34,746 nt of DNA. It comes from Octopus bimaculoides. Taxonomy: Eukaryota. A model generated the notes under the pieces. It saw only the letters and a list, made by a program, of their open reading frames with translations, made no database searches and was not told the origin of the DNA. Position numbers and translations under genes: made by a program. Below, one piece after another: positions 11,401 to 33,550 of the stretch. The stretch spans positions 22,116,431-22,151,176 of the forward strand of contig NC_068989.1 of NCBI RefSeq assembly GCF_001194135.2, written 5' to 3'. The stretch's first letter is position 1. Each line of letters opens with the position of its first letter.

Positions 11401-14400
11401 ACTCTCACCTCTTTCCATTCACTCAAACTACAAACAGCCTAGATAAATTTAAACTGAGAATTGGAAAGGAATGGCAACATTTCAATGGGCCTTTTTTTGT
11501 TTTACAAAAATCATACAGGTCATGAAACCTGGACATGTTTTTGCAATGGGAAAGCAAAGAACACTTATATGAACAGAGGCCTTTGTTTTCAAACAAAGAT
11601 ACATGAGGATGAAAAAATATACTAATTCATCCACAAACAACTTTGCACACATACATGTGTGTGTGAGTGTGTATGTGTGTGAATGTGTATGTATGTGAGT
11701 GAATGTGCATAGTGCATATATGGGAGTGTGTATATGCATGTATTTGTGAGTATGTATATGTGTGAGTCTGTGTGTGTGTGTATATATGCATGCATGTGTG
11801 TAAGTGTGTGTTATTTATTATAGTCATTTGACTGTGGCCATGCAGGATTAGGTGATGAGAAAATGTACTTCAAAACATTTCTTTTTTGCTTTGTTTTTGT
11901 TAAACGACTAAGTGGAACAAACAAGAATCCCTTGAGCCATTATACTATTGTTCACATCCTCTTAAAATCATGTCCTATTGGGTGAAATGAACTATCCAAC
12001 ACCAGTATATGCACAGCGTGCACATACATACTCTAAAACAGCAGCCTTAACATTAATATTACAAATGAGTTATGAAATCTTGTTCTAATTGAAATATGAA
12101 ACCTACAAAATATAATATAAATATAAATTGTGACTTAATTAATGAATACAGAGGGTGGAATTATGGTTGTTGATCAACCCTAATTTCATCATCATCATTT
12201 AACATCCATTTTCCATGCTGGTGTGGGTTTGGACAGTTTGACTGAAAACTGATAAGCTAGGGAGCTGCACCAGGTTTCAATCTGATTTGGCATGGTTTCT
12301 ACAGCTGGATGCCCTTCCTAACACCAACCACGCAAGAGTGTAATGGGTGCTTTTTATGTGCCAATTACAAAACACCGGCCAACAGCTACAACTGCGATCT
12401 CACTTGGCTTGACAGGTCTTCTCAAGCATTGTATATCGCCGAAGGTCTTGGTCACATGCCACTGCCTCTGTGAGGCCCAAAGTTCAAAGGGAGCTTTTTA
12501 ATTGCCACTAGCATGGGTGCCAGATATGTGACACTGAATAAGCTACGATTGATTTCACTTNNNNNNNNNNNNNNNNNNNNNNNNNNNNNNNNNNNNNNNN
12601 NNNNNNNNNNNNNNNNNNNNNNNNNNNNNNNNNNNNNNNNNNNNNNNNNNNNNNNNNNNNNNNNNNNNNNNNNNNNNNNNNNNNNNNNNNNNNNNNNNNN
12701 NNNNNNNNNNNNNNNNNNNNNNNNNNNNNNNNNNNNNNNNNNNNNNNNNNNNNNNNNNNNNNNNNNNNNNNNNNNNNNNNNNNNNNNNNNNNNNNNNNNN
12801 NNNNNNNNNNNNNNNNNNNNNNNNNNNNNNNNNNNNNNNNNNNNNNNNNNNNNNNNNNNNNNNNNNNNNNNNNNNNNNNNNNNNNNNNNNNNNNNNNNNN
12901 NNNNNNNNNNNNNNNNNNNNNNNNNNNNNNNNNNNNNNNNNNNNNNNNNNNNNNNNNNNNNNNNNNNNNNNNNNNNNNNNNNNNNNNNNNNNNNNNNNNN
13001 NNNNNNNNNNNNNNNNNNNNNNNNNNNNNNNNNNNNNNNNNNNNNNNNNNNNNNNNNNNNNNNNNNNNNNNNNNNNNNNNNNNNNNNNNNNNNNNNNNNN
13101 NNNNNNNNNNNNNNNNNNNNNNNNNNNNNNNNNNNNNNNNNNNNNNNNNNNCATCAATTTCAAAACTACACAATCATGAAGTTTAGAGAAAATAAAGAAT
13201 AAAGGAGTGATTTACTTTTAGCAGGTTGAGGACCATGGGGCCTAATTGCTGAAGTTTTCTTCCCATTGGTCTTCAAACTCATAAAAGCAGCTCTGCCTTC
13301 AGCCTCAATAGTATCCACAGAGTCCTTATCAGTCAGGGAAGCCGTTTTCATCATGCCAATAAATGTACGACTTTGAAATTCACTGAAATACAATACAATA
13401 CAAAGATAAAATGAGAAAATATGTAGTTTTGGGATACAAAACTGCTTGAGCAGAGGAGTGTGAGAGGGAGGGGTGCATTGGTGGATAGGTAGAAACTAAA
13501 AAACTTGGATCTCAACCATATGGTCTCAGGTTCAGTCCTACTGCATGGTACCTTGGGCAAATGTCTTCAATTTTAACCACTGGCTGACCAAAGATTCAAG
13601 AGCAGATTTGGAAGACAAAAACTGAAAGAAGTGTCATATGTGTGTGTTCCTCTCTGTCCTAGTCCTGACATTGCGTGTCAGCTGTAAACAAGTCTCTGGC
13701 ATACAAAGGGTCTCATTTCTTTCCAATCTTCACTGAAAGCATGTCTGCCCATTGGGAAATATTACCTTGCTTGGAAAAAAAGTGAAGGTTGGTGACAGGA
13801 TAGGCATCCAACCATAGAAAGACAACCACAATGAACTCCATCTGACTCATGCATAATCATCATCATTGGTCAACATCTGTTTTCCATGCTGGCATGGTTG
13901 GACGGTTTGACAGCTGTTTTACTTTCATTTCTTTGGCTGGATACACTTTGTAATGCCAACCGCTATACAGAGTGTGCTGGATACTTTTTACATGCTACCA
14001 GCACAGGTGCACGCATGGAAAAGTGGATGTTAAAACAAAGATGGGGACTCAAGAACAGAAACCATTCCTCAGATAAGCTTCCATAGACACATTCTACTTA
14101 CAGATTTTTTAGTCAACCGAAGGCTATAGGAGGAGACAATTGCCCAAGATGCTGTATAGTGAGATCAAATATGAAACCATCCAGATGCTAAACAAACTTC
14201 TTGATCATAAAACCATGCCTAGTTTTAAACAATGACCCAGTTGGCAAGCACTAAAGAGTTTGTCTTAACCTATCTAAATCGAAAGAGTCCACTGATCAAC
14301 TGCAATGTTTCTGCTCAATTTTTCAAACTATTTTAAAGAGTGCATTAGGTGTTATTTTCATGGCATCTCTGCAATGTTTTAACTCAATTCACCAAACCAT

Positions 14401-17182
14401 TTAACAGAGTGTACTAGGCACCTGAGAGAGATTCACTGCTTTCATTTCAATAAATTTTGAAAATAATGAAGAATTTATAAAAATAACTCATTAACATAAT
14501 TTACATTTGACGGATATTTGTCCTCATCTTGTTTGTTGTTAACACAACATTTCGGCTGATATACCCTCCAGCCTTCATCAGGTGTCTTGGGGAAATTTCG
14601 AACCTGGGTTCTAATTCCGAAATACAGAACTGTATTAACTCATTATAAAACTGATGTAAGGCAGCAAACTGGCAAAATAGTGCACTGGTCAAAATGCTTA
14701 GTAGCATTTCGTCCATCTTCACATTCTGAGTTCAAATCCTGCTGAGGTAGACTTTACCTTTCATTCCTTGAGGGTCAATAAAATAAGTTCCAGTAAAATA
14801 CTGAGGTCAATGTAACCAACTTACCCTTCCTCTAAAATTGCTGGCACCGTGCCAAAATTTGAAACCATTATAAGAGTGATATTTGGAACAAATTAGCATG
14901 AAATTTTTATGGCAGTTTTTAATTTACACTACCTTAAAACAGGAAGTTTGCATCTTAAAACCAGAGGAAGTCTCAGGTAAGTTGATATCAAAAGTGCTCA
15001 GTGAATTGTTAAGATGTTAAAACATGATGGGAGGAATAGGTTTATTCTTGTGAAAGAGTGCTAGGTGAGACAAACAGACAATTAGAGAAGGGAGCAATAG
15101 AAGGAAAAAAGGAAGTTTAATGTCAAGGGTTTAAGAGAAAGAATCAGAATGATAAGGACAATGGGATGGGTTGAGTAGAAGGCAATTCAGGGCAACCCTA
15201 TGTTACATGTTAGTAGACAAGAGTGCTCCAAGAAACACCTTTAATACTTACTAGTGTCGTCTTTGTAAGTAATTGAAGGGCTCTGCTTTCATTCTTACAC
15301 CTTCACTGAAGATGGCATCTGCTTTTTTGCTATTTCCTAGGAGTTCATACGCACTGGCCCAGGATTCATAAAACATTGCATTCTGAGAACCAATCCCTTT
15401 ACCAAACATATGTTCATACAACAATATTGGATTGTCATATAGATTGGCCTTTCAAAAAAAAAAAAGAAGAAAAATATTTTTATTGGAAAATTATTAACTC
15501 TTGGAAAAAATTAACTTTTTAATTATCATTTATTTTTGACATTTCATTTAAAAGTTACTAAGTTCTTCAGGGTGCTTAAATTTTACCAGTTTTAGTTTAA
15601 GACTGTGGCCATACTGGGCAACACCTTCATTTCTTTCAATTTAAATGACTTCAAAAGTTTATCAGAGACATATACATGCAATTATGCTGCAGAAATTTTG
15701 TACTCTTAAATAACTTGGTTCTAACGTGAAACCCTATTTTATCACTGAATCTCTTCTATCATGGAAGTCATTAACCCATTAGCATTTAAACCAGCCATAT
15801 CTGGCCCAAATATTCTGCCTGTTTTATACTAAAACTGACTAGATCAGGCCTCTCACACCCACTCTGCAATGTCATTCTAAAAATAATTATATCAACGAAA
15901 TATCAAAGCTACAAGATACTACAGGAGTAATTTTAGAAAATGTGAATAAATATTACATTTGACAGAATAATCTGTATACTAAAGGGTTTAGCTGGCCATA
16001 TCCAGCCAATTCTGTCTATTTTATGATCAAACTGGCCAGATCCAGCCTCTCACACAAGCCCTACAGTATCATTCAAAAAATTAACAGTTCCCTCATCAAA
16101 ATCTCAAAGCTACAAGATAATGCATGATTAATTCAAAACAATGTGAATAAATAAGCTATATTTTTGACAAAATGTGAATGCTAAAGGGTTAAACACTGAA
16201 TTCAACAGGAAAATATGTTTAACTTTTGGAACTCAATGTTATAGCAAGATTTTCTTGAATGCAATCTTTCACAAATACAGAGAATATTTGTGTTAATTCT
16301 ATTGACCTCAGAGAAGGATAAAGGTGAAAGATAACTATTACGATAAAGGGGAGATAACCAATACGAAACAAAATATAATTTTGTTTAATGCTATTTAATT
16401 TACTTACAAATTTCACCCAGATTTCAACATATCTTGGATCATTCTTGTATCTGTCCACTTCAGAAAATGTTAACAAGCAGCTTCTGAGCAGAGAGGGAAG
16501 ATCCTTCCCACCTTGTGGGTTGGTTTCTTCCATCCATGTGATATACCTAAAAAGAACAGAATTAGTCAACATGTTTCCAACATTAAAAAGTCATAGCAAA
16601 CAATTAATATACAATATTACAATAATCCATACATTCTATTCTATAATACAGTAATAAATATATCAATCTAAAGTATGTGTGGTGCATAAGAAATGAAAGT
16701 AATTACAAACCACTTCAACAGTTTTATTCGTCTTTTCATTTTTATATACATCCACACATCCACACAACATATATCCATGTATATATATATATATATATAT
16801 ATATATCATTTATCTTTTACTTGTTTCAGTTAGTAGTTTTAGCTGACTGGGTTAACCCCAGTACTTAACTTTTTTTAAGCTTGATACTTATTTTATCAGT
16901 CTCTTTTGGCAAACCACTAAGTTACAGGGACATAAACACACTAACCCAATTTGTCAAGCAGTGGTGATGGACAAACAGACACAATGATACACACACATCA
17001 GGCTTCTTTTAGTTTCTGCCTACTAAATCCACTCACAAGACTTTGGTTGGCCCAAGGCTTTGGTAGAAGACACTTGCTCAAGGTGTCACGCAGTGGGACT
17101 GAACCTGGAACCATGTGGTTGGAAAGCAAACTTCATACCACACAGCATGCCTGTGCTTAAATACATACATATNNNNNNNNNN

Positions 17183-17221
<39 letters not shown>

Positions 17222-19858
17222 GAGTCATATCCCTATGTATATTATTATCACTGAAATATCTGTCCTACATTTCTGTACTATTATGTAAATGAGTTGTACC
17301 TAGCACAATTTTGGGATCTTTTTTAAAACGGGGGCCACATTTTTCATTAACGAAACACTTTGAAACTTGGAACACTGGTAGAATGTGTCATATAAAACAG
17401 CTTTTTCTCTTAGTCTTCTTTAAAAAAAAAGAAATCCATAAGTTATTCCATGTTAAAGTTGTCGTATTTCTGTAATTTCAACCAATCACTGACGTCCATT
17501 CAGCCGATATACATTAAGTGCCGACTACATAAACAAACGATTCTGAAACAATTAACCCTAACTCTAGGGTTAGGGTTAGGGTTAGAACAAAATTTAAAAT
17601 GAAAAAAGCAAATAAAACGAAGGTATGGAGATTAAATACGCTTTACACCGCTTAATCAGCCAAAGGAGTAAATGTAAACAATTGAATACTTGTCAGTGAT
17701 TGGTTGAAATTATCGAAATAAGACAATTTTTTACATGAAATAAATTCGAATACAAAAATATTTTTCTGTTCTATAACACAAAATAGATAAGTATTCGAAG
17801 TTTGAAAGTCTTTCCGTACCAAAAACACTACGTAAAACATTAATGAAAAATGTGGCCCCCGTTTTAAAATAGATCCCAATTTTGTTTACGTTTTGTAAGT
17901 AACTCTTTGATACTAATATTTGATAGCTTGTGAGAGAAGCAAGTGAATCTTGGTGACCCAAAACAAGAGTAAAACTAGTCAACACAATCTTCATTCCAAG
18001 CAGCTTCACCAAAACATTGTAGTAAACCACAATGCCAAATTTAGTAATGACATTAAATATGTATGAGTGATAATGTGTGATCATCATCAGCATTATTTTA
18101 TGCCTGCTTTCGATACTGGTATGGATTGAGTGATTCAACAGAATCTGTCAATTTGGAGGACTATACTATGCACCAATGTTTCTGTGGCTCAATGCCTTCC
18201 CTAATACCACTGTAGAGAGTTACTGAATGTTTTCTTTTTCAAGGCAAAAGTGTGTTTGCATTGTAACTTGCAAGAATAAAGAGAGTCAAATGGAGCTCCC
18301 TGCAACTGAAAAGGAAGAGAGAGAGAGAGAGAGAGAGAGGTGATTTAGAGCAAGGTGGTGTGAGAGTAGAGCATGATGAGATGAACACTTGACTGTTGTG
18401 AGAGAGAGAATGTGGAAGGGACAGAGGAAAAGATTAATGTCAGGGATTACAAATTAAATTTATATAAAAACACACAAACATATGTATACAGAGACATTCA
18501 CATACACAGAGAGAAGATATTGAACTAAGAATATCATCATAATTCAATATCCATTTTCCATGATGGTATGGGTTTGGATAGTACAATACGGGCTGGTAAC
18601 CTGAAGGACTGCACCAAGCCAGATATCCTTCTAACGCCAGCAATTTTAGACAGTGTAGTGAATGCATTTTACATAGTACTGGCACTAGTGGGGTTAACCA
18701 AGTAACTTTGCAAGACAAGACACCTCGCCTGAAGTAAGGGAGCAGTAATGAGTGAAGTGGCTTAATGCCAAGTGACAAGATGTTTAAAATATGCCAGGGG
18801 AACAGGAACGGGTGTCAAGCTGTAGGGGAGACATTGGTAACTCTAGTTGGAAGAGAAGGAGAATAACAAAAAAATATACAAACCTGAACCAAATATCTAA
18901 GGGGTCATTACCCTGGTATGTTCTTAATTCTTCTTCAAATTGCCTGTAAAGACACACACAGAAAAGTTTCAATATGTTTGCTAATATTCAGGCTCAGAGA
19001 GACTTAATATCAGCATAACTCAATGGAAGTATCATTACATCGAATAATGCTAACAATACTGCATCATGAAGTTTTTTTTCCTCCCCAGCAGCAATATTTT
19101 TGGTATCACAGTTACCATATACCCTAAACTACACTTATTTGTACAATACAGCAAAAGTTACCTTTTACTTTCTGTTGAAATGAAATATTTCTGTATAACA
19201 TTATCAAAATAATAGAAGTTGTGACAAGTAAAAACGAAGTTTTTCTTTGTGATAGCATGTCTTTTTCTAAAACTCATCTATGAAGAAAGGATGTCATCTA
19301 TTCTTTACTAGGTAAACTCAGTCAAATGAAAGAATCTACATTTACAAATACAAGCATCGTCGGTTCTGGGTGTAATCGTAGAATAGAGTCAGTAATTATC
19401 TAGTGCTACAAAAACTGTAATTTCCTTGGATGTATACTTTTTAAGCATTGGAGGTTTTACATGTGAACAAAAGAAGTTAAAAAAAAAAAGAGATGTGGGA
19501 TTTTTATGCTCCTGGTTTTCGTAAATTTTAAACTTCTGCTATCCCGCCTTATGACATCGTTCATGCGTTTGTACTGGGTTTTAGCTTTAGGGTTTTAGAT
19601 TTTAGGGCAGGATTTTTCTCATGATAGAGTTGGAGGGACCAAGAGGATTGAAAAGGGTGCACACCAATTGTCACTTTTTATCTTTTGTTTGTTTCAGTCA
19701 TTGGACAGCTGCCATACAGGGACACTGCCTTGAACAACTTCAAACAAATCAATCCCAGTACTTGTTCTAACGGTCTCTTTCGCCAAACTTGTAAATTATA
19801 TGGATGTGTAGTCAAAGAAACATGGATTTTCAAGTGATGGTGAGAGACAGACACATAC

Positions 19859-19921
<63 letters not shown>

Positions 19922-22900
19922 TGTGTATTTCTTCTATCTTAATGAATAAAAATTCTTCTGATAGAATAAATGGGTTAATAGAAACCAATGTAGCAAAGAA
20001 CACAAAATAACTGTGGTTTAGTTCCTGTTTTTAAGGCAGGAACTCCTTGAAATTTTGGGTATTTGAGTATATTTAAGAATTTAAGGAATGGAGAAAACGC
20101 ATGTTAAAATTGCATACTTTATTCCTACACATGTTTCAAAGGATTACAACCTGTGTGATCCATAGGGATCTTTGATATTAAAATTGTAACCTTCTCATCA
20201 GGGAAAGCATGGGAATCATCTTAAACGTAAGACATTATGACCAATTATGAAAACAATAGATGGATAAGGTTATGACTTGATTCATTTGAAAAAAAAAAGT
20301 ATGTAATTTTAACATGCTTTTTCTCCATTCCTTAAATTCTTACATATATATATATATCATCATCATCATCTTTTAACGTCCGCTTTCCATGCTAGCATGG
20401 GTTGGACGATTTGACTGAGTACTGGTGAAACCGGATGGCAACACTGGCCTCCAATCTGATTTGGCAGAGTTTGATTGGAGGCTGGTGTTGCCATCCAGTT
20501 GTTCTATATATATATATATATATATATATCCAACAGTCTTCTGTCGGTTATCTTTCACCAAATCCACTCATAAGGCTTTGGTCAACTGTATAAGATACTC
20601 CCAACAAGGAGCCATGCAGTGAGACTGAACCTGAAACCATGTGGTTGGGAAGCAAACATCATAGCATTAATTAACTTCCATTAAATGCATCATTTAATAA
20701 AATTGCAATGGTTTTCAACTTTTTAAACATGTCCAACATCATGAGAAAGACTGCCAAATCTTCGTTAATGAGAATGGGCAGGCAAAAAAATTTACAGATA
20801 TGTTTTTAGCGAGGGTAAGGATCAGATGTTTCTTAGTTTCAAAATCACTTACATATATTGTCAGAAATACCAACCAAATCTACCTCAGATAACATATCTT
20901 ACTCCCAGGGATATTTTCGAGAATTTAGTTCAAGATAACCCTAAAAAAATGCAGGACAGTCACAGGTTAGAGAATTTTCCTGACCACCAGTTGCTACTGT
21001 TTATCCCAAGTTGATCCTGATTGATTTAATTTCACCTATAATCAAAGGTAACCCAGCTATGATAACATCCTTTTGTCTATGAATAATGTACCTCAGACTG
21101 TGTTATCCAGTGTGTCCATCGTAAAGACAGTAGGGAATGAAGGAAACTTAGATGCTATTTCTAGCAGGTCGAGCAACTACATCAAGGTATTCTTATTGGT
21201 TTGAACTGACAACCATATGATTCCATAGAGTTAAATATACCAGAGATATGCTTTCCTATGTCTCATACTTCTGGTTTCTTATCACTGACCTTCACTGAAA
21301 GCAATATATTACACTTAACATCAGCAAAAACTTTGACCCACAGCCTGGCATGATAACATACCAGAAAACTAATCTTCAGACTATTTGTATTGATTTATGA
21401 GTTAGCTATAAATAGACGTTTGCTAAAATTAATCAATTTAGTCAAGCTTCTAGAACCTTCAGTAGAGCTATTTGTTTGGAAAATTCACAAAACTTGAATC
21501 TATTATTTATTTAATTAGACAGCAATTAATCAATTTTTCGATGTTTACTTTTTCAGTCTCAACACCAAGCATACTGTTAAGTGTGGTGGCATGATTTTCA
21601 GGAGTATTCAAAAGGCATGGCAGCCAGAATAAGAACGGCTTTAAAAAAAGTTCAGGAATTTATTAGCTCTGCTGGTAACAAGGGTTATTGCAGTGAGGCT
21701 ATTGCTGAGGTTTGAAGCATCTCATTCAGATTTTCCAGTTCATGACCGCAGCAGCCTTACTATATATTACTAGAAAAAAAGCAAGGCCAGCTACACGAAA
21801 TTAACTACTGTATTGCCATAAAAGGAATTAACACCTACATGGACATGATTAGACCAGCAAATCAGTTGGTGTGTAATTAAATAAACAGTAGACTCAAGTT
21901 TTGTGAATTCTCCTGCCAAATAATTCTACTAAAGGTTCTAGAAGCTTGACTAAATGTTATAAAAAAACTGGGATACTGAATTCACAAGCAGAACCTTAGG
22001 TGCAACACAGAACTGTCAATCAGTTTTGTGATAAGATATTCTCACTCTTTCTGTTTTAATAACCAATATTTTTATATAAATGACTAAAATATTTTATGCA
22101 ATGAGGACTTTTAACTATCACATCCACTGCCATGTGCACCGTTTTATTCAAATAATTGTTATGCACATCTAAGTGCAAATGTTCCAGGTAATTGAAAAAA
22201 AAATGGAAACTTATCTCACCTTCACATGTAGCCTACCTAAAAGTGTGTATTGCCAATGACGATTTAATGACGAAACCCACTAAAACATGATGCTTGTATA
22301 TAAGTTGCAAAACTGCATAGTAGTGAGACGTGAGTCTTGAAACAAATGAAGCAAGTACGCTCACTGGGTGGATTATGTAAATATCGTGTCGAGCGTGAAA
22401 CTTCACAATATATGATAACCATTCATTAACTGTACCACAGGTTATTTATCCCATGTAATATTGATAATTAAAATTGATTATCCCATATAATATTGATTAA
22501 TGTAAATTAGGAATGCCCAATTGGCAGATAAAATAGCCATAACGAAAGGATGCCCAATTTTCTTTTACTTTCATTCATTCCATTTCCTTTCATCGTGTAC
22601 ATAAAACGAAGAGATTCTGGTAATTCTTCAGATTAACACCCGCACGATTACCTAACCCTAACACTAATCCTAAAACCCTAACCCTAATCCTAACCCCCTA
22701 GTGAAAATCGTTCGGGTGTTAATCTGAAAAATTACCGAGATTCTTTCGGCATTTCTGAATCTACTCAGTATACGGGTTTGAAAAATACAGGATTTTTCTC
22801 CTGTAGATTAAAAAGTATAACATAGCGGCATTATAATAGTGGTTAAGAGATTTAAACCACAAACCGTTATATTCTTGATCGTAGAACATAATTACTCAAG

Positions 22901-23859
22901 AATGAAAGATAACCTGCTACTCTGCTACCAAACTTCGAAATTATTTACACATGATTTTATGTGAATGTGTATTTTTTTTTAATGCTAACACATCTTTATT
23001 TGTACTTAAATATATACATAAGGAGATAAATATAAGATGTTTCTTCGTGGTTGCTCGACCTACTAGAAATAGCAACCAGATCTTTCCTAAATCTAACGGT
23101 TTTAGAAAAGGATATTAGATTGCCTTAAATGCGTATCTGGAAAAGAAGATGGGATGGCTACGACTGGAATGCTTTTGATCATAGTTCATCAGAACTTTGC
23201 TCGATCAAGGCTGACCTAGAGCTTAGCATTAAATATAGAGCAAAACATTTAAATGTATCTTTATTTCTAAATATATCGTTCAATATTTGGCAATGTCCAA
23301 GGAGTGTCGAGCCTTCGACATACAATTTTTCTCTTAATTTTTACCTCATTTTTCTGTTCAAATATTTTTCCGTTATTTTAACTCTGGTTACACCTTAAAT
23401 GCATTAATCCGCTTATCTTAAACTATTTCTGAAAACAATACCATAAGTCGGCCGCCAAATGAAGTCTCGACGTAATAGCTTAAGCATGATCGAAATAACA
23501 GGTACAACAACTTCAAATTACATTTAAGTTTCAAACAGAAAACATTAGTATTATCCAAACTAGCTACACTATGCCTTAGTAAATAAGTCAGGACATAAAT
23601 GGCTGGAATGGAATATTTTTTAGACCGTATCATACATAAGGGCCCTGTCCATCAAATTACTGACACGAAACTAAACAACGATAACAAACAACAATATTAG
23701 TTTTTGTAACAAGAATAATAAATATCACACAACTCACTGCTTCGTAGCACGAGTCTGGCTAGCATGATCTCCTTTGGGTTGTAAAGCTGAGACGAGCTGT
23801 GAAACTGTTCGACCATTTTTCCGTGGTAAAACATTCTCTTTACTCAGTTCCCATTCCAT
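2029..23859 (-). CDS. BUB1: MadBub (BUB1/BUB1B family) spindle checkpoint gene, 5' part, 10 coding exons; continues beyond the left edge
   Basis: Join(-): 23738-23859, 18884-18943, 16408-16546, 15252-15448, 13216-13382, 11054-11238, 8529-8605, 6565-6606, 4399-4589, 2029-2146. All introns are GT-AG with matching phases, giving 1298 nt of open frame. Hallmarks: MEWELSKENV (KEN1), TPR block (DPLDIW, YKNDPRYVEIW, FYESWA), PGPW, GLEBS (MYCKEKVYAGVEEFSFEEIRA). The kinase region is not in the window, so BUB1 versus BUB1B naming is unresolved. Confidence 0.95.
3235..3557 (+). mobile_element. SINE family A copy
   Basis: Same head and body as 535-911. Confidence 0.75.
4028..4373 (+). mobile_element. 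SINE family A copy ending 25 nt from the exon 9 donor
   Basis: GGCATGGCTATATGGTTAAGAA head to GTGCCCCAGCATGGCCGC tail. Confidence 0.8.
4399..4589 (-). CDS. BUB1: MadBub exon 9: GLEBS / Bub3-binding motif (MYCKEKVYAGVEEFSFEEIRA)
   Basis: Acceptor ATTTCAG, donor GTGAGT, phase 2-1; clear GLEBS motif. Confidence 0.93.
5245..5613 (-). mobile_element. SINE family A copy
   Basis: Reverse complement of family A with an internal (TA)n. Confidence 0.8.
5930..6160 (+). mobile_element. Old degenerate RTE-like LINE RT C-terminal fragment
   Basis: Across a frameshift: SQFRYYGHMIKMLQKRISRGIL / RRSKRGPRTNW. Confidence 0.6.
6565..6606 (-). CDS. BUB1: MadBub exon 8: TPKHVPEIDSKALS
   Basis: 42 nt, acceptor CATTTAG, donor GTAAGT, phase 2-2; positionally matches the BubR1 TP..I...N.ILS segment (from memory). 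Confidence 0.85.
6640..7260 (-). mobile_element. RTE-clade LINE 3' end (RT C-terminus, 3' UTR, (GAT)n tail), interrupted by an N-gap
   Basis: ORF segment RRLRWYGHVVRMEEDSCVKKC...GRGRPRKTW is typical of RTE RT C-termini. Confidence 0.88.
8529..8605 (-). CDS. BUB1: MadBub exon 7: MTPKKSLSVIKTAPFVVQNDDTGCL (ABBA2-like position)
   Basis: Strong polypyrimidine acceptor TTTCAG. The donor GTACGT (phase 2) is required by the phase of exon 8. Confidence 0.78.
9010..9545 (-). mobile_element. RTE-LINE 3' UTR-derived repeat (same family as 6640-6870)
   Basis: Shared CATCATCAT..CCGCTTTCCATGC.AGCATGGGTTGGACG...GGATGCCCTTCCTAAC..CAACCAC block. Further copies at about 2480-2765, 3560-4020, 12187-12530, 13855-14035, 18530-18800, 20355-20500 and 28700-28945. 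Confidence 0.8.
9590..9830 (-). mobile_element. Possible ancient LINE RT fragment
   Basis: TDGLLLDELKFGVEIL loosely resembles the PGPDG..AELLK.G motif upstream of LINE RT domains; weak. Confidence 0.3.
10687..10968. mobile_element. hAT (Charlie-like) MITE
   Basis: TIRs CAGAGGTTTTCAAACT / AGTTTGAAAACCACTG; 8-bp TSD ATCTAAAA / GTCTAAAA (7/8). Confidence 0.85.
11054..11238 (-). CDS. BUB1: MadBub exon 6: ...KFEIHTDE (ABBA1)...VNRENCRNPGPWPQNK
   Basis: Acceptor TTAATAG, donor GTAATT, phase 1-0, ABBA-like FEIHTDE and PGPW motifs. Confidence 0.88.
13216..13382 (-). CDS. BUB1: MadBub exon 5: EFQSRTFIGMMK...EGRAAFMSLKTNGKKTSAIRPHGPQPAK
   Basis: Acceptor TTTCAG, donor GTAAAT, phase 2-1 fits both neighbours. 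Confidence 0.85.
14541..14586 (-). ncRNA. Minimal type I hammerhead ribozyme motif (Penelope-type) in a short repeat
   Basis: Minus strand GACAC-CTGATGA-A-GGCTG(gagggtatat)CAGCC-GAAA-TG-T-T-GTGTT. Stem I 5 bp with one G-U, stem II 5 bp, vestigial stem III. Confidence 0.7.
15252..15448 (-). CDS. BUB1: MadBub exon 4: ANLYDNPILLYEHMFGKGIG...FYESWASAYE...GVRMKAEPFNYLQRRH
   Basis: Not in the ORF track; translated by hand. Poly-T plus AAG acceptor, donor GTAAGT, 197 nt phase 0-2, TPR motifs GIG, FYESWA, AEP. Confidence 0.93.
15775..16188. mobile_element. piggyBac-like MITE, tandem dimer of about 200-bp units
   Basis: TTAA on both sides; ends CCCATTTAGCATT / AATGCTAAAGGG; internal junction AAAGGG at about 15986 followed by a second similar unit. 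Confidence 0.75.
16408..16546 (-). CDS. BUB1: MadBub exon 3: YITWMEETNPQGGKDLPSLLRSCLLTFSEVDRYKNDPRYVEIWVKF
   Basis: Acceptor TTTTAG, donor GTAAGT, YKNDPRY motif. Confidence 0.95.
16810..17158 (-). mobile_element. SINE family A copy
   Basis: TTTTACTTGTTTCAGT tail to GGGACTGAACC..GAACCATGTGG head. Other copies at about 13490-13650(+), 19675-19855(-), 20525-20660(-), 28205-28290(-), 30650-30810(-) and 31366-31440(-). Confidence 0.8.
17313..17877. mobile_element. 565-bp foldback MITE with long imperfect TIRs and a central CCCTAA/TTAGGG core
   Basis: GGGATCT..TTAAAACGGGGGCCACATTTTTCATTAA mirrored at the right end; inner TTCAACCAATCACTGAC mirrored; AATTTT direct repeat on both flanks. Confidence 0.8.
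18884..18943 (-). CDS. BUB1: MadBub exon 2: QFEEELRTYQGNDPLDIWFR
   Basis: Acceptor TTTACAG, donor GTTTGT, 60 nt phase 2-2, conserved TPR start motif. Confidence 0.93.
20074..20342 (-). mobile_element. Short non-autonomous Penelope-like/pLTR derivative with 48-bp terminal inverted repeats
   Basis: 20074-20121 versus the reverse complement of 20295-20342 are 46/48 identical; internal hammerhead core. Confidence 0.65.
20114..20210 (-). ncRNA. Type I hammerhead ribozyme motif inside an inverted-repeat-flanked 269-bp element
   Basis: Minus strand ATGCTTTCC-CTGATGA-GAAGGTTACAA...TTGTAATCCTTT-GAAA-C(ATGT)G-T-A-GGAA(TAAA)AGTAT. Predicted GUA cleavage between 20127 and 20126. Confidence 0.65.
21434..21957. 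mobile_element. Non-autonomous DNA transposon with about 80-bp TIRs, possibly Tc1-derived
   Basis: TTTAGTCAAGCTTCTAGAACCTT...TAATTA (21437-21517) is mirrored at 21874-21954. An internal HTVKCGG resembles Tc1 TVKHGG (weak). Confidence 0.65.
22613..22743. mobile_element. 131-bp MITE: 37-bp TIRs around a degenerate (CCCTAA)n core
   Basis: GATTCTGGTAATTCTTCAGATTAACACCCGCACGATT versus AATCGTTCGGGTGTTAATCTGAAAAATTACCGAGATTC. Confidence 0.75.
23738..23859 (-). CDS. BUB1: MadBub exon 1: MEWELSKENVLPRKNGRTVSQLVSALQPKGDHASQTRATK (KEN1 box)
   Basis: ATG at 23859, EWELSKEN motif typical of Mad3/BubR1, donor GTGAGT, ends in phase 2. Confidence 0.93.
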
Positions 23860-23896
23860 GTCGCCAAACCGACTTCCTCAAGATAACAGAATAAAT

Positions 23897-24520: not shown

Positions 24521-24921
24521 NNNNNNNNNNNNNNNNNNNNNNNNNNNNNNNNNNNNNNNNNNNNNNNNNNNNNNNNNNNNNNNNNNNNNNNNNNNNNNNN
24601 NNNNNNNNNNNNNNNNNNNNNNNNNNNNNNNNNNNNNNNNNNNNNNNNNNNNNNNNNNNNNNNNNNNNNNNNNNNNNNNNNNNNNNNNNNNNNNNNNNNN
24701 NNNNNNNNNNNNNNNNNNNNNNNNNNNNNNNNNNNNNNNNNNNNNNNNNNNNNNNNNNNNNNNNNNNNNNNNNNNNNNNNNNNNNNNNNNNNNNNNNNNN
24801 NNNNNNNNNNNNNNNNNNNNNNNNNNNNNNNNNNNNNNNNNNNNNNNNNNNNNNNNNNNNNNNNNNNNNNNNNNNNNNNNNNNNNNNNNNNNNNNNNNNN
24901 NNNNNNNNNNNNNNNNNNNNN

Positions 24922-24958
<37 letters not shown>

Positions 24959-25256
24959 ATAAACAAGAGAAATGTGTGAGAAAAGAAAATGAGAGGCGGC
25001 GGTCTTTATTAGAAGTTTATATCACTTTTGAGACAAGTCTTTCAATATATAAATACAACGTTGTGAGGTGTTTATCAAATTTCAAATGAAGCGGTTTTGC
25101 TATTGCTTCGACAATTACCTGTTGTCATGAACAATGCGATATTGCGCAGCAGTTCAGCAGTCACTGAACTCATCTTACACCGCTTTACAAAATCATCATC
25201 GTCTACAGCAACGCTCAATCGTGCTTTTACAACCACGGTTACCGAGTTCGGTTACT

Positions 25257-25889
25257 ATGGACTTGATGAAATATCTGAGGGCGAACGGGAATATACACCG
25301 GAAAAAATTTGAATCGATATTCAAACGATATGACCATTCATTCTCTGATTGTGAAGTTGTCGATTTAAATGAGTTGTTTAAAGAGAGCGATGAAACACAT
25401 AAACCATCGTGCCGCACAACGAAAAACGAGAGAAAGTGCCGCAAACCTAGAAAGTTAGCGGTAATCTCTAACAAAAAATACCCGAGATATCAAACAAGGA
25501 GTGTAACCAAGAGAAAATGTTCAAAGTCTACAAAAGGCACCACTAACCGCCTTGCGAGAAAATCAAAAACAGCGAGAAAATCAAAAACAGCGCGAAAATC
25601 GAATGTAAAAGATTTTCTCCGGAGTCCTTTACCTAATGGTAATATGATGGGATCGATCGTGTCGCGAAACAAAAGTATGTTCTGTGAACCACCAACCTTT
25701 ATGGATCTAGATGTTTCGAATTCAGATGACAGCGATAATATTTCTGATGTTGATACAAACGATGAAGATTCTGACAAGAGTCAGTTCTGTACTCCCCCGA
25801 GTGTCATTGAAGTAAGTGGTTTCTGTACTCCACCGACGGTAATTAACGAAAAGCTGAACGGAAACTTTAACCAGAACAAGGAAAAGTAA
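25257..25889 (+). CDS. ORF (210 aa from ATG 25257; open from 25134) with an N-terminal Scm3/HJURP-like CENP-A-binding motif, a basic middle and an acidic/TP-rich tail; possibly the first exon of a spliced gene
   Basis: Long stop-free frame, CpG-rich, good Kozak context (actATGG). N-terminus MDLMKYLRANGNIHRKKFESIFKRYDHSFSDCEVVDLNEL fits the Scm3/HJURP pattern. Possible donors at 25811 (GAA|GTAAGT) and 25885 (AA|GTAAAG). The ORF is well supported; the identity is an inference. Confidence 0.7.
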   Translation: MDLMKYLRANGNIHRKKFESIFKRYDHSFSDCEVVDLNELFKESDETHKPSCRTTKNERKCRKPRKLAVISNKKYPRYQTRSVTKRKCSKSTKGTTNRLARKSKTARKSKTARKSNVKDFLRSPLPNGNMMGSIVSRNKSMFCEPPTFMDLDVSNSDDSDNISDVDTNDEDSDKSQFCTPPSVIEVSGFCTPPTVINEKLNGNFNQNKEK

Positions 25890-27544
25890 AGTATTTCATT
25901 TTATTTTATTTTCATTTTAAAATTCAAGCCGCTAACATCAAGACACGGGTATTTTTGCTTAAATGTTGTGATGAGAATTATGATGTACCGACGCTTTTCA
26001 CGGAACAGTTGCACTTATACAACCAAAACATTGTTGGGGGTATCGAAATCCCCCACCAACTCATTTTTTTTTTCCGGGTTCATGTTTTTAACAACGGGGA
26101 TTACGATTTGTAAATTTCTGTATAGAAATTTTCAAAAATATCCTATTTGGTGTGTCTAACCGAANNNNNNNNNNNNNNNNNNNNNNNNNNNNNNNNNNNN
26201 NNNNNNNNNNNNNNNNNNNNNNNNNNNNNNNNNNNNNNNNNNNNNNNNNNNNNNNNNNNNNNNNNNNNNNNNNNNNNNNNNNNNNNNNNNNNNNNNNNNN
26301 NNNNNNNNNNNNNNNNNNNNNTTACTACTTTACTGAAAAACAAGTATATATTTTCATTTATAAATTTTTCTTCCGAAAACTTTAAAATAGAAAAATAGTA
26401 GTGTTGTCTACTGAGGCCTCACGGTCTAGGGGACCATTTATGATCAATGATTGTTGTGGCTTGCTCTCAATATATAAATACAGTAGAGCCCAGTGCACCG
26501 GTAATCCTCCTTTTTAAAAATAAATCAATATATATCCATTTTACCGGAAGTTATGACGGAAAAATCGGATCTTGTGAATTTTCCGAAAGTCCCCTCCCCA
26601 CCTCCAGGGCCGTCAGCGTTTTCCACACACTTGTTTGTACCCCACCCCAGGCTGGTTTATTTTTATTTGTTCCCGGGTGAAGGTCTTTATATTGACCTAC
26701 TACTTCTCTATAGAGACGGCCCTGTCAATTATTTTAATTCAATAATATAACGATGGTGTCGAGAAATAAAAACAATAATTGGCTATCTTTCGTTTTGACT
26801 CGAATTTTGTCAACAAATTACTGGGTAATTTCTGTGAGTACGTGTTGTCTTAAACATTTACCTATTCGTTTCGGTCATTCAATTACAATTATTGTACATT
26901 AGTCGTTATCACTGATTTGATTTTAATTGACGTCGCTTTCGCCTTGTATTTATTACGTATCCTTCTATTATACATCTCAAGTGTTAGTGTGTCAGTATAT
27001 ATAAGCACACTTATAAAGCGTACATTTTCTTTTACGTTCAAATCTTGCTCGTTTCACACCTACTATATTTTAACTTTTAGGAAAATGGAGTTTTTTTCAA
27101 TGAAATTTTATAGAAATACTTTTCAAATGGGGTACTACTAAAGCAGCGCGGACCCGAACGCGCTAGCTAGTCGTGAGTGGTCGATCCGACGAAAAGTGCG
27201 CGCGAGTGCAAATGAATACATGTGTGCGCGTGCGCGCGCATGCAAATTAGTAAATAATTTTTTTTTTATTACTTTTTTCTTTTCTAAACAACGTAGATAG
27301 GTAGAAGGAATAAAAATAACACACTATCTGTTTTTGTTAACTTCATACATTTTTTTTCTTTTAATTAAATTTTGTGAACAAAATAATTTTTATTTTCTAA
27401 ACAACGTAAATAAATTTTAAAAACGGTGCACATTGGGATTAGACACCGAGGGAAACTTGATATGCTAGAAATAACAGCTAAACGCAAAAAGTTATAAGAA
27501 CCACAAGGGGTCTTTGATGCCCTGCTAACATCTTTAGTCATTGT

Positions 27545-27915
27545 TATGGACTCTTGTCTCTGTGGTTAGTGTTGGACTCACAATCATGAGTTAGTGAGTT
27601 CAATTACTGGACCGGGCTGTGTGTTGTGTTCTTGAGCAAGACACTTTATTTCATGTTACTCCAGTTCACCCAGCTGTAGAAATGAGTTGCAACATCACTG
27701 GTGCCATGTTGTACCAGCTTTTGCTTTTCCCTTGAATAACATCAGTGGAGCGAAGAGGGGAGGCTAGTATGTATGAATGACTGCTGGTCTTCCATAAACA
27801 ACCTTGCCCAGACTCATTCCTTGGAGGGTAACTTTCTAGGTGCAATCCAACGGTCATTCAAAACTGAAGGGGGTCTTTACCCTTATTATGGACTGTTTTA
27901 TTCTCTGCTTTCTCT
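27545..27915 (+). mobile_element. Third SINE-like repeat (tRNA-like head, GAGCAAGACACTT / CCAGTTCACCCAGCTG body)
   Basis: Degenerate A/B boxes followed by a SINE-type conserved body; family not identified. Confidence 0.55.
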
Positions 27916-28507
27916 GTTTATGCATTGTAATTTTGTTGTCAGTATCGTCATTTTAATGTCCATTTTCCCATGCTTGCATAGGACAGACAGATCTGTTGAG
28001 GCAGATTTTCTACTGCTGAATGTCCTTCCTGTCACTAACCCTCACCTCTTTCCAAGCAAGGTGATATTCCTCCATGTTTTAACAGAAAATTGGAAATCAA
28101 CAACAATACTGGTTAGACAATGAGGCTTGGTTTATTTGGACAATGAGGATGGTTTAATTTTACACGCAACTGTTGTGTGACCTATACACACATATACATG
28201 TGTTACCAGATCTGCTTACAAGGCCTTCAGTGGGACTGAATTTGAAACCATGTGGTTAGGAAGCAAACTTCTTTACCACACAGCCAAGCATGCACCTCTG
28301 TTTATAGATTGTAATTTTGTGGCCAAAATAAATTAATTTAAGGACCCTACTCAACATGTAAAACATTTTTATTTAACAAAATCGCTTTTTGTCATCTTTC
28401 ATATCTTGTTTGCGTATTTGTATATCAAATTCTTGAAACTAAGTTCTTTAATTTTTATTTTTTTTTACAATGATTTTTAACCAAATTTTTATCAGTTATT
28501 TTACTCT

Positions 28508-28625
28508 TAGGTTTACAATCCACCCAACGCTGTATTAGGTCTACAGTTCACCCAGCTTTGTTTTGGGGGTTTATAGTATACTCAGCTCTGTAGTCAGAAT
28601 TATTTACAGTCCACTCACTTATGCT
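28508..28625. repeat. Degenerate tandem repeat of about 28 bp (GGTTTACAGTCCACCCAGC...), about 4 copies
   Basis: Recurrent TTTACA(A/G)T.CAC.CA motif. Confidence 0.5.
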
Positions 28626-29077
28626 GAGCATTTTATTCTGAGTAGGTTACAGTGAGTACAGAATCAACAGAAGGCAGCATCCCCTGGCAAAGTGGATTGG
28701 CCTGCAAGAGTCCAGTGCCAGTTCCATTGAAAAAAAGCTCTTGTGCTGGTGCCATGTAAAAGCGCTTCTGCTAGTGGCACATTAAAAGTACCTAACACAC
28801 AGTGTAAAGTGGTTGACGTAAGGAAGGGCATCCAGTCATAGAAACCAAGCCAAATCAGACTAGAACCTGGTGCAGCTCTCTAACTTGCCAGCTCTGGTCA
28901 AACTGTCTAACTTATGTCAGCATGGAAGACAGATGTTAAAAGATGAGGATGGTTTATTTTTACACATACAGGAAACAACATATTTCTTTTAATACCCTAG
29001 TGATGCTTGTAATAATTAAACTAAACCTTTTTTTGTTAATCATGTAAATTCTATTCTTTTTTTCTTTCTATTTGTAG

Positions 29078-29131
29078 ACAATCAAATCTATGGCAAGAAC
29101 GCTTCAGCAGACATTATGTTCCAGTCAATAA
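29078..29131 (+). CDS. Candidate 54-nt internal exon on the plus strand (gene and frame uncertain)
   Basis: Long polypyrimidine tract plus TTTGTAG acceptor and GTAAGT donor. Phase 2 reads QSNLWQERFSRHYVPVN and is compatible with the donor at 25885. Confidence 0.45.
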   Translation, partial: TIKSMARTLQQTLCSSQ

Positions 29132-29593
29132 GTAAGTTTTTAACCCTTAAATGTATTGGTTTCAAATTTTGGCACTGCCAGCAGTTTTAAGTTGGTTACA
29201 TCAACTCTAGTATTCAACTGCTACTTACTTTATAGAGCCCGAAGGGATGAAAGGCTAAGTCTACCTTGGCAAAATTTGAACGTGAAGTTGGATGAAATGA
29301 CACTAAGTATTCTGCCAGTTCACTGCATTTAACCCTTAAATATGCTGTTTTTTTATAGTTTTACATAAACTGTCCTGCAGTTTATCAGCTTACTTGATCA
29401 AAAGGAAATAATAGTGTAGCAATCTATACATATAAAATGTAATCTTTGAACAGATGGATAAAATTAACATGTCTCTTTACATCTCTATATGTATTGGTCT
29501 TACTGTGAAATCAGGCCGAGGATGTTTTCAGCATCCATGAGACAAGGATTGAGCTGGATGGCTTTAACATCACTTTACAATTCTTTAAGATAC

Positions 29594-29624
<31 letters not shown>

Positions 29625-29636
<12 letters not shown>

Positions 29637-30000
29637 GTTTCAGTCATTTGACTGTGACCATGCTGGGGCACCAGCTTTAAGGGATTTAGTTGAAGAAATC
29701 AACCTCAGAACTTATTTTTTATTTTCACTTTTATTTTTTGAAGCCCGGTACTTATTGTATTGGCTTCTTTTACCAAACTGCTAAGTTACAGAGGTGTAAA
29801 CATACCAACATCAGTTGTCTCACAGTGGTGAAAAACAAACAAAGATACAAAGACACACATGCACACACACACAATGGGCTTCTTTCAGCTTCTGTCTATC
29901 AAATCCACTCACAAGGCTTTGGACAGCCTGAGGCTATAGCAGAAGACACTTGCCCCAGGTGTGATGCAATGGAACTGGACCCAGAACCATGTGATTGAGG
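29625..30000 (-). mobile_element. SINE family A copy
   Basis: Reverse-complement match to family A, preceded by a poly-T run. Confidence 0.8.
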
Positions 30001-30824
30001 AGCACCCAGTGCCACAGTTTTGCATTGGTACTGTAGTAACTGTCTAGTTATCAATAAGAATTATTTACATAAATGAGTTGAATCACAGGTTTTGTTCATA
30101 TCTTAATAAGTAGTCTGTTATTTTTCTTGTAAAATCAGAAGTTGTTGGAGGATCCCAGACTTTACAGTCCAAAGCAATTACTTGGCAGCCTTCATTATGG
30201 TTCTTGTACATGCACTAAAGCTTGTGCAAAAATATTCAATATACCTTACCATGTACCATGACATTAGTGTGGCATGCAAGATTGTTGCACTTAATGCTTT
30301 TGGAAAAAGAAGACTACACAACATGAATCTTTATAACGTTCAAAAATTTTACAAATCCTTCTCTATACTATGTGTATCTCAGTTTTTGAAAAAGTACACC
30401 CATGTCCCCACATGTTGTAAGAGGCAACTAAAAGGGCTTAGAAACAAAGGGTATCAGGTCTGAAAGCACTGCTTCAAAGAATTCATTCAATCTATGCCAG
30501 CATGGAATTTGGATGCAAAAAAGATGAGAGAATGATTCACCTTTCCACTTTTGTGAATATAATCTGCACAGAAATGCTTATGTGAAAATGTGTGTGTTAT
30601 AAGAATGCACATGTAAAAAATAAACTTCCTTTTTTTATTTTATATCTTTTATCTTTTACTTGTTTCAGTCATTAGACTGTGGCCATGCTGGGGTATTACT
30701 TTGAATTTTTAGTCAAATGGAACAACCATACTGCTTATTTCGGTCTCTTCTGCTGAACTGCTAAGTTATGAGGATGTAACCACACCAATGCTGGTTGTCA
30801 AGCAGTGATGGGGAGACAAAGACA

Positions 30825-31044
30825 AGCACAGACACATACATATAGCCCCACAGGGGGCGAAACATAGAGGAGACAAACAAGGATAGACAAAGGGTTTAAG
30901 TCGATTACATTGACCCCAGTGCATAACTGGTACTTATTTAATCGACCCCGAAAGGATGAAAGGCAAAGTCGACCTTGGTGGAGTTTGAACTCAGAACGTG
31001 ATAGTAGACGAAATACCGCCAAGCATTTCATCCAGCGTGCTAAC
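30825..31044 (-). mobile_element. tRNA-derived octopus SINE (family B), young copy
   Basis: GTTCTGAGTTCAAA...GGTCGACTTTGCCTTTCATCCTTTCGGGGTCGAT with CpGs retained. Older copies at about 14660-14870(+), 4900-5100(-) and 29160-29330(-). Confidence 0.8.
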
Positions 31045-31246
31045 NNNNNNNNNNNNNNNNNNNNNNNNNNNNNNNNNNNNNNNNNNNNNNNNNNNNNNNN
31101 NNNNNNNNNNNNNNNNNNNNNNNNNNNNNNNNNNNNNNNNNNNNNNNNNNNNNNNNNNNNNNNNNNNNNNNNNNNNNNNNNNNNNNNNNNNNNNNNNNNN
31201 NNNNNNNNNNNNNNNNNNNNNNNNNNNNNNNNNNNNNNNNNNNNNN

Positions 31247-31259
31247 GTGTGTGTGTGTG

Positions 31260-31306
<47 letters not shown>

Positions 31307-31367
31307 GTGTGTGTGTGTATATATATATATATATGTGTGTGTGTGTATATATATATATATATGTGTG
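31247..31367. repeat. Compound (GT)n(AT)n microsatellite array; one of many (AT)n/(CA)n/(GA)n/(CAT)n tracts in the window
   Basis: Direct reading; similar tracts at about 2365-2430, 5423-5465, 8432-8472, 11650-11810, 18315-18340, 19860-19918 and 32110-32175. Confidence 0.95.
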
Positions 31368-32114
31368 CTGGGCTTCATTCAGTTTCTGCCTACTAAATCC
31401 ACTCAAGGTTTTAGTTGACCTAAGGTCATAGTTGGAAACACTTACCACACAGCCATGATGCCTACACCTACGGATAAAATGTCACTAAGCATTTTGTCTG
31501 GTGTGCTAGCGATTCTGCCAGTTCATCACCTTATAAATATGTTTATTTATTTTCAAGAAATGCTATAATTCTAAAATTGTTAGCAAAATTAGTTTAAACA
31601 TTTGTANNNNNNNNNNNNNNNNNNNNNNNNNNNNNNNNNNNNNNNNNNNNNNNNNNNNNNNNNNNNNNNNNNNNNNNNNNNNNNNNNNNNNNNNNNNNNN
31701 NNNNNNNNNNNNNNNNNNNNNNNNNNNNNNNNNNNNNNNNNNNNNNNNNNNNNNNNNNNNNNNNNNNNNNNNNNNNNNNNNNNNNNNNNNNNNNNNNNNN
31801 NNNNNNNNNNNNNNNNNNNNNNNNNNNNNNNNNNNNNNNNNNNNNNNNNNNNNNNNNNNNNNNNNNNNNNNNNNNNNNNNNNNNNNNNNNNNNNNNNNNN
31901 NNNNNNNNNNNNNNNNNNNNNNNNNNNNNNNNNNNNNNNNNNNNNNNNNNNNNNNTTGTTTGCTTTAATTTCCTATATTTTACCCATAGGTCTATGCTAA
32001 CTAAAAATCAAAGAACCGCAAAAGCTCTTTTAAGATGGCAGGAGCATTTTGCTCACATGTTTCCAAGGTAAAGTTTTTAATTTTGTTTCAATCTAAGTTA
32101 CATTAATTACACAC

Positions 32115-32158
<44 letters not shown>

Positions 32159-33416: not shown

Positions 33417-33550
33417 TCATCCACTCTCACTGAAAACACACACATACTCACCCACACATTTNNNNNNNNNNNNNNNNNNNNNNNNNNNNNNNNNNNNNNN
33501 NNNNNNNNNNNNNNNNNNNNNNNNNNNNNNNNNNNNNNNNNNNNNNNNNN

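Follow-up and report, generated by a model that had tools for sequence, protein, structure and literature searches.

Recent remote-homology work has placed orthologues of Scm3/HJURP, the chaperone of the centromeric histone CENP-A, in most metazoan clades, including gastropods and bivalves (Hollis et al. Sci Adv 2026, PMC13322267), an extension of the family range to which the original prediction for the present locus had pointed correctly. The invertebrate members published there include Biomphalaria glabrata XP_013081743.1, Crassostrea virginica LOC111126111, Pomacea canaliculata LOC112559012, Mizuhopecten yessoensis KP79_PYT13079, and Capitella teleta ELT94853.1. According to the same study, the scm3 domain is defined by the end of the CENP-A-binding helix, a KY dipeptide in which conservative substitutions of the lysine are tolerated, and an acidic/short-hydrophobic strand, and strict cut-offs were deliberately not applied to Scm3/HJURP. 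The available text and supplements of PMC13322267, with one table truncated, mention no cephalopod, and none is found in its scm3 alignments; HJURP is not treated in van Hooff et al. 2017.

The gene described here lies in a 34,746-nucleotide stretch of Octopus DNA (the window), on a eukaryotic scaffold that contains N gaps, and is very probably the octopod orthologue of Scm3/HJURP. Since cephalopods go unmentioned in the available text and supplements of PMC13322267, we regard it as a new, unannotated member of the family. An octopod member is expected and will not surprise a specialist, and it carries lineage-specific peculiarities. It offers a likely function for a cephalopod gene that is publicly labelled "uncharacterized protein", and it adds cephalopods to the picture of nearly all animals keeping Scm3/HJURP, leaving the view of the family unchanged.

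The reading frame, splice sites, and orthologues point to a real three-exon protein-coding gene at 25257-32071 (+) that is under purifying but relaxed selection. Exon 1 (25257-25885, +) encodes residues 1-209 and two bases of codon 210, and it falls within the longest clean ORF of the window in the ORF listing (25134-25889, +; 251 aa). The ATG at 25134 that opens this ORF was ruled out as the start, because in contig L002, the closest orthologue, the extension is out of frame; the start is therefore M25257, with A at -3 and G at +4, which puts the domain at the extreme N-terminus, as had been claimed. The donor of exon 1 (AA/GTAAAGT at 25885/25886) is equal in position and phase to that of the annotated Argonauta gene, and retention of intron 1 leads to an in-frame stop at 25887-25889. 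Another candidate donor, GAA/GTAAGT at 25810, was discarded because it is not conserved in L002. Exon 2 (29078-29131, +; acceptor ttgtag/A, donor AA/GTAAGT) encodes K-QSNLWQERFSRHYVPVN-K with the first WxExF motif; it is the top-scoring segment for Argonauta exon 2 within 25890-32000 (score 33 vs 17 for the next), and its length of 54 nt and its phases are identical to those of the Argonauta exon. Exon 3 (31990-32071, +) encodes SMLTKNQRTAKALLRWQEHFAHMFPR with the second WxExF motif and ends in a stop at 32069-32071. It is matched by the Argonauta protein (tblastn, 40% identity, E 0.035) with the same acceptor phase and stop position, and the C-terminus reads ...FAHMFPR-stop in Octopus and ...FAHLFPK-stop in Argonauta. 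The predicted spliced product (25257-25885 + 29078-29131 + 31990-32071) has 254 aa; the protein collection holds no identical entry, and an Rfam scan of the window gave no matches.

Orthologues were recovered from octopods. Two true relatives, P0001 and P0002, emerged from an exhaustive phmmer search that covered 1.84 billion representative proteins. The former is 72% identical and comes from short genomic contigs (L002-L004) of another octopod, which are collinear with the window over 25080-26017, with a nucleotide identity of 77%. The latter is 36% identical and corresponds to NCBI GAB1601124.1, "uncharacterized protein LOC115216700 [Argonauta hians]", a name that agrees with the earlier remark that invertebrate members are typically left uncharacterised. 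Argonauta is an incirrate octopod, and the Argonauta hians gene has three exons with structure, phases, and exon-2 length as in Octopus. Across the same 1.84 billion proteins, phmmer gave no relatives beyond Octopoda (e.g. squid); the expected conservation in other cephalopods is thus seen in the L002 octopod and Argonauta, and in this search not outside that group. Homologue searches with the 90-aa N-terminus and with the octopod alignment gave no candidates, and a search with human HJURP gave mammalian fragments only, with no bridging sequences. In the protein alignment of the window and L002, all indels are whole codons, and dN/dS is 0.44 overall and 0.34 for residues 1-45; the gene is therefore coding, constrained, and fast-evolving. 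High dN/dS and rapid evolution are typical for HJURP genes (Hollis et al. Sci Adv 2026, PMC13322267), and through its N-terminal domain, polar disordered remainder, and rapid evolution the octopod protein fits the family as described in that study.

Sequence comparison shows that the protein begins with ~40 residues of scm3 homology, in which helix, K/R-Y, and strand segment keep the register of the family. The 40-residue peptide MDLMKYLRANGNIHRKKFESIFKRYDHSFSDCEVVDLNEL, encoded at 25257-25376 (+), aligns without gaps to residues 17-56 of human HJURP ("Holliday junction recognition protein", PDB 3r45 chain C), at 10/40 identical positions (BLOSUM62 score 49). This is the alignment that had been proposed, and the human sequence given with it matches 3r45_C residues 17-56 exactly; the span given for it, 25257-25379, is right for these 40 residues, but its end takes in a further residue, F41. 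Among 100,000 fixed-register shuffles, none attained the score of 49, and five attained 10/40 identity. When a profile of the three octopod N-termini was run against 177,635 distinct PDB sequences, human HJURP 3r45_C ranked first (E 0.04), again without gaps (octopod 2-40 against HJURP 18-56), with the next match at E 0.47, a modest margin. Single-sequence phmmer of the product against the PDB returned no matches. With hhalign, 11 mammalian HJURP N-termini were aligned in the same register at 82.7% probability (P 9.5e-6). The Pfam, PDB, published-HMM, and hhalign comparisons, together with the AF2 helix, place the scm3-like domain at 25260-25376 (+), residues 2-40.

Profile searches assign the octopod proteins to the same family. 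Pfam PF10384 (Scm3) was the best match for all three octopod orthologues (E 1.2e-3 and 19 bits for the window protein, 8e-4 for P0001, and 1.4e-2 for P0002), which are non-independent tests. The Pfam check suggested in the original prediction thus gave Scm3 as the top match, but at 18.7-19.5 bits for the octopod proteins (15.6 for Argonauta), below the gathering cut-off of 24.3 bits. The isolated 51-aa domain scored 22.5 bits (E 9.4e-5), and none of nine shuffled or reversed controls matched. HMMs were built from four published scm3 alignments that cover fungi, choanoflagellates, and many animals (Hollis et al. PMC13322267; preprint PMC13001451), and the window protein scored 18.6-23.0 bits against them (per-sequence P 2e-9 to 4.5e-8). 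These scores were reached by 0 of 20,000 shuffles (best 7.9-13.2 bits), and among 599 six-frame segments of the window the HJURP-like ORF was the sole outlier. The profile-profile comparison of the HHpred type that had also been suggested was carried out with hhalign, in which the octopod alignment matched the four published alignments at 94.8-96.6% probability (P 5.9e-10 to 5.1e-8). As to the fungal Scm3 pattern noticed at the outset, the core fits the fungal/choanoflagellate profile with 18.6 bits and an hhalign probability of 94.8%. All methods place KFESIFKRYDHSFSDCEVVDLNEL on the family consensus ..l-e-x-I-I-e-K-Y-d-x-p-F-e-d-s-D-v-v-D-L-x-x-l, and in this register, the one originally proposed, the sequence tests support the identity of the domain as Scm3/HJURP.

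The residues that define the family can be located individually. In all profile alignments, the KY of the family corresponds to R24-Y25 in the window and Argonauta proteins and to R-F in L002. The segment that follows it, D-H-S-F-S-D-C-E-V-V-D-L-N-E-L, has the acidic/short-hydrophobic character of the strand, and D31-C-E-V-V-D-L-N-E-L40 has its length of ~10 residues. The AF2 monomer contains a helix at residues 3-24 (pLDDT 65-69) and is otherwise disordered (mean pLDDT 48). The hydrophobic residues L3, M4, L7, I13, F18, I21, and F22 of this helix are spaced as in the family, whose helix of about 25 residues has a hydrophobic residue every 2-4 positions, in line with the conserved hydrophobic helix pattern that had been claimed. 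The monomer model as a whole is of low confidence, and any amphipathic N-terminus could yield such a helix. The strand is absent from the monomer, as expected if it is formed only on binding. The distal DxGxL...FG segment, which fungi, choanoflagellates, and many invertebrates possess, is absent, and no profile alignment passes residue 40; the strand is followed by FKESDETHK in Octopus and by IFSNSGGSD in Argonauta, the latter at best a remnant. Because relaxed constraint on the DxGxL motif has been reported in Metazoa (PMC13322267), this motif is not strictly required.

We weighed this identification against the reading that the gene encodes an octopod-specific protein of other function, whose helix and acidic segment look scm3-like by chance or convergence, and we consider that reading unlikely. 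It would account for the sub-threshold Pfam Scm3 scores, for a match that spans only ~25-39 residues without the DxGxL half, for the lack of a non-octopod relative in the phmmer search, and for the EF-hand-type helices (calpain 13 and secretagogin, E 0.5-3) that follow HJURP among the PDB matches. These weak matches prompted an EF-hand reading of LRANGNIHRKKF, which fails, since neither calcium-ligand position 1 nor position 12 is acidic (no Asp at loop position 1, no Glu at 12). In contrast, the four independent profiles from the literature agree with Pfam and with the reverse search of the PDB on both family and register; 0 of 20,000 composition-matched shuffles came within 5 bits of the observed score; and the signature residues are in place, namely K/R-Y, an F four residues later, and VVDL.

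Two further readings accept the scm3-like stretch and dispute its role. We see hardly any likelihood that it survives in a decaying or non-functional remnant, either a pseudogene or an untranslated part of a transcript divergent from the neighbouring BUB1 gene. Although the exact product is absent from the protein collection, the exon-1 frame hits a stop if the intron is retained, and 0.44 would be a high dN/dS if the gene is essential, the frame, the three exons, their phases, the canonical splice sites, and the ending FAH[LM]FP[KR]-stop are common to Octopus and Argonauta. The indels relative to L002 all preserve the frame, pS of 0.26 exceeds pN of 0.13 between the window and L002 (a difference of about 3 standard errors, estimated from counts), and a high dN/dS is what PMC13322267 describes for HJURP genes. 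It is similarly most improbable that the gene is a paralogue or a sub-functionalised scm3 protein serving another H3 variant or a non-centromeric role, with the true octopod CENP-A chaperone encoded elsewhere. The product of 254 aa is much shorter than the gastropod candidate (929 aa), and the distal part of the scm3 domain is missing, as might be expected of such a derivative; short Scm3 proteins are normal in fungi, however, and HJURP length is highly variable (PMC13322267). The exhaustive phmmer search gave only one orthologue cluster per octopod lineage, and the available text of PMC13322267 reports no scm3-domain protein with a different role.

Like the published invertebrate Scm3/HJURP proteins, the octopod protein combines an N-terminal scm3 domain, K/R-Y followed by ...D-V-V-D-L..., a polar disordered remainder, and rapid evolution, and it shares their database label "uncharacterized protein". 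Over a 28-aa core, it is identical to published invertebrate scm3 domains at 5-11/28 positions, with 6-9/28 for four molluscs and up to 11/28 for echinoderms. In contrast to these proteins, its domain is without the DxGxL...FG half, and the K of KY is replaced by R; it carries three FCxPP[TS] and two WxExF motifs that are octopod-specific, and octopod proteins measure 254-374 aa as against 929 aa in Biomphalaria. With human HJURP (3R45 chain C, 17-56), it shares an ungapped alignment of 39-40 residues at the extreme N-terminus and the residues L-R-A, K/R-Y, F, D, V-V, and L, whereas the TLTY box and the beta-sheet extension of the human protein are missing from the octopod one. A Pfam search of the 254-aa product (E up to 10) detected neither HJURP_mid nor HJURP_C (R1/R2, Mis18-binding) and returned only Scm3 and a spurious TraV match; for this reason, we file the gene as a member of the Scm3/HJURP family and not as a vertebrate-type HJURP. 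Human HJURP is several-fold longer than the 254-aa octopod protein. Fungal and choanoflagellate Scm3 (K. lactis Scm3, PDB 2YFV; XP_455312) resembles the octopod protein in being small and in the core ...I-[IF]-x-K/R-Y-x-x-x-F-x-D-x-D/E-V-[IV]-D-L, but the highly conserved E-T-G-E-I-V-x-D-x-G-H-L that follows the strand in fungal Scm3 is absent.

The likeness to the family suggests how the protein would act. By analogy with described complexes (3R45, 2YFV, PMC13322267), the helix would lie antiparallel to CENP-A's alpha-2 helix, with R24-Y25 touching a conserved glutamate of the latter. The segment EVVDLNEL would pair, as a beta strand, with the L1 loop in the targeting domain of CENP-A. If the octopod protein behaves as its relatives do, helix, RY, and strand would together hold the CENP-A/H4 dimer before its entry into the nucleosome, and CENP-A/H4 would be delivered to centromeres once per cell cycle.

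Beyond the scm3-like residues 1-45, the protein consists of a basic region (46-138), an acidic region (139-209), and a basic tail (210-254). The basic region (25392-25670, +) is Ser/Thr-rich and, by composition and AF2 pLDDT < 50, predicted to be disordered. Its pI of 11.7 and its 30 K/R in 93 residues agree with the basic region that had been predicted to come next to the domain, and the three-octopod alignment contains within it the conserved stretch KP.KL.V..NKK.PRYQTRS.TKRKCSK. We speculate that this region may bind DNA. A motif scan located three copies of FCxPP[TS], of which FCEPPT (25680-25697, +; residues 142-147) lies in the acidic region 139-209 and is followed by FCTPPS (25785-25802, +; residues 177-182) and FCTPPT (25821-25838, +; residues 189-194). 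Each of the three octopod proteins has three copies, and the motif can be written more fully as [KR]S.[FL]C[TDE]PP[TS], found at residues 142-194 here and at residues 134-262 of Argonauta P0002. The W.E.F motif is likewise equal in copy number, with two copies at residues 215-248 and at P0002 residues 335-368. The x position of FCxPP[TS] is part of a Thr-Pro in two of the Octopus copies and is Asp or Glu in the others, a pattern that would fit a phospho-switch. Speculatively, centromere recruitment may depend on FCxPP and WxExF, much as it does on Mis18-binding or CENP-C-binding modules in other lineages.

The neighbour of the gene is a checkpoint-kinase gene, BUB1, on the minus strand at window 11051-23868 (-), possibly with more exons downstream to about 4334. 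Six exon matches on the minus strand (11051-11171, 13196-13405, 15245-15467, 16403-16549, 18775-18972, and 23728-23868) are collinear with Argonauta hians BUB1, and one ORF of the window matches Mad3_BUB1_I (E 3.8e-14). The first coding exon of BUB1, at ~23728-23868 (-), lies head-to-head with the HJURP-like gene at about 1.4 kb from its ATG, and the same arrangement occurs in Argonauta with a gap of about 2.1 kb. Because the two mitotic genes are head-to-head in both genomes, they may, speculatively, share a bidirectional promoter. A three-way DNA alignment further reveals a 16-nt block, ACTCATCTTACACCGC, at 25168-25183 (+), ~75-90 nt upstream of the ATG, which is identical at 15/16 positions in the window, L002, and Argonauta, with diverging flanks. 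This block may be a 5'UTR or promoter element.

Put together, these features allow a bolder proposal, to which we give rather low credence. Octopods may possess a minimal HJURP from whose scm3 domain the distal DxGxL half was lost, in which the targeting modules of other lineages (the vertebrate Mis18-binding R1/R2 and the CENP-C-binding C-terminus of CAL1/NEFR-1) are replaced by three FCxPP[TS] motifs, with x being T, D, or E and possibly CDK-switchable or phosphomimetic, and two WxExF motifs, and whose gene is co-regulated with BUB1 from a conserved bidirectional promoter. More generally, the short architecture and the repeated octopod-specific motifs could show how recruitment to centromeres is rewired around a preserved CENP-A-binding core, and the gene would offer a way into the centromere biology of cephalopods.

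Several minor observations concern the surrounding DNA and the homologue searches. The sequence TTTCAAATGAAGCGGTTTTGCTA at about 25080-25102 is common to the window and L002 only and contains a CHR-like TTCAAA. N gaps at 24521-24921, 26165-26321, 31045-31246, 31607-31955, and 33462-33550, among others, are flanked by microsatellites, and they fall in the promoter region and in both introns, so that the assembly is incomplete here; microsatellites include (AT)n at 24922-24955 and (CA)n at about 32110-32150. Two further proteins from the exhaustive phmmer search, P0003 (2,635 aa) and P0004 (948 aa), were rejected as homologues, since their matches are limited to residues 162-207, the FCxPP region, and they are ORFs through a 165-bp satellite on an unrelated contig, which has 49% G+C and shows no similarity to the window at the DNA level. 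That satellite array (L005 8210-27908; ENA contig ctg10118, sample ERZ25074135) comprises ~119 copies of 165 bp with very long ORFs. Within a BUB1 intron, an ORF at 6816-7265 (-), interrupted by an N gap, reads ...RLRWYGHVVRMEEDS...GRGRPRKTWAEVVRQDL..., which looks like the C-terminal end of ORF2 from a non-LTR retrotransposon; it had no Pfam match at E < 0.01, and a related copy is present in the Argonauta BUB1 locus (L001 5506-5685). The window also contains two dispersed families of short repeats with 70-87% identity to several places in the Argonauta locus L001, one at about 3960-4025, 6624-6805, 9008-9169, 12186-12350, and 20355-20417 and the other at 3271-3361, 5468-5576, 16994-17133, 20532-20608, and 29870-30025. 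Both look like SINE-type interspersed repeats common to octopods.
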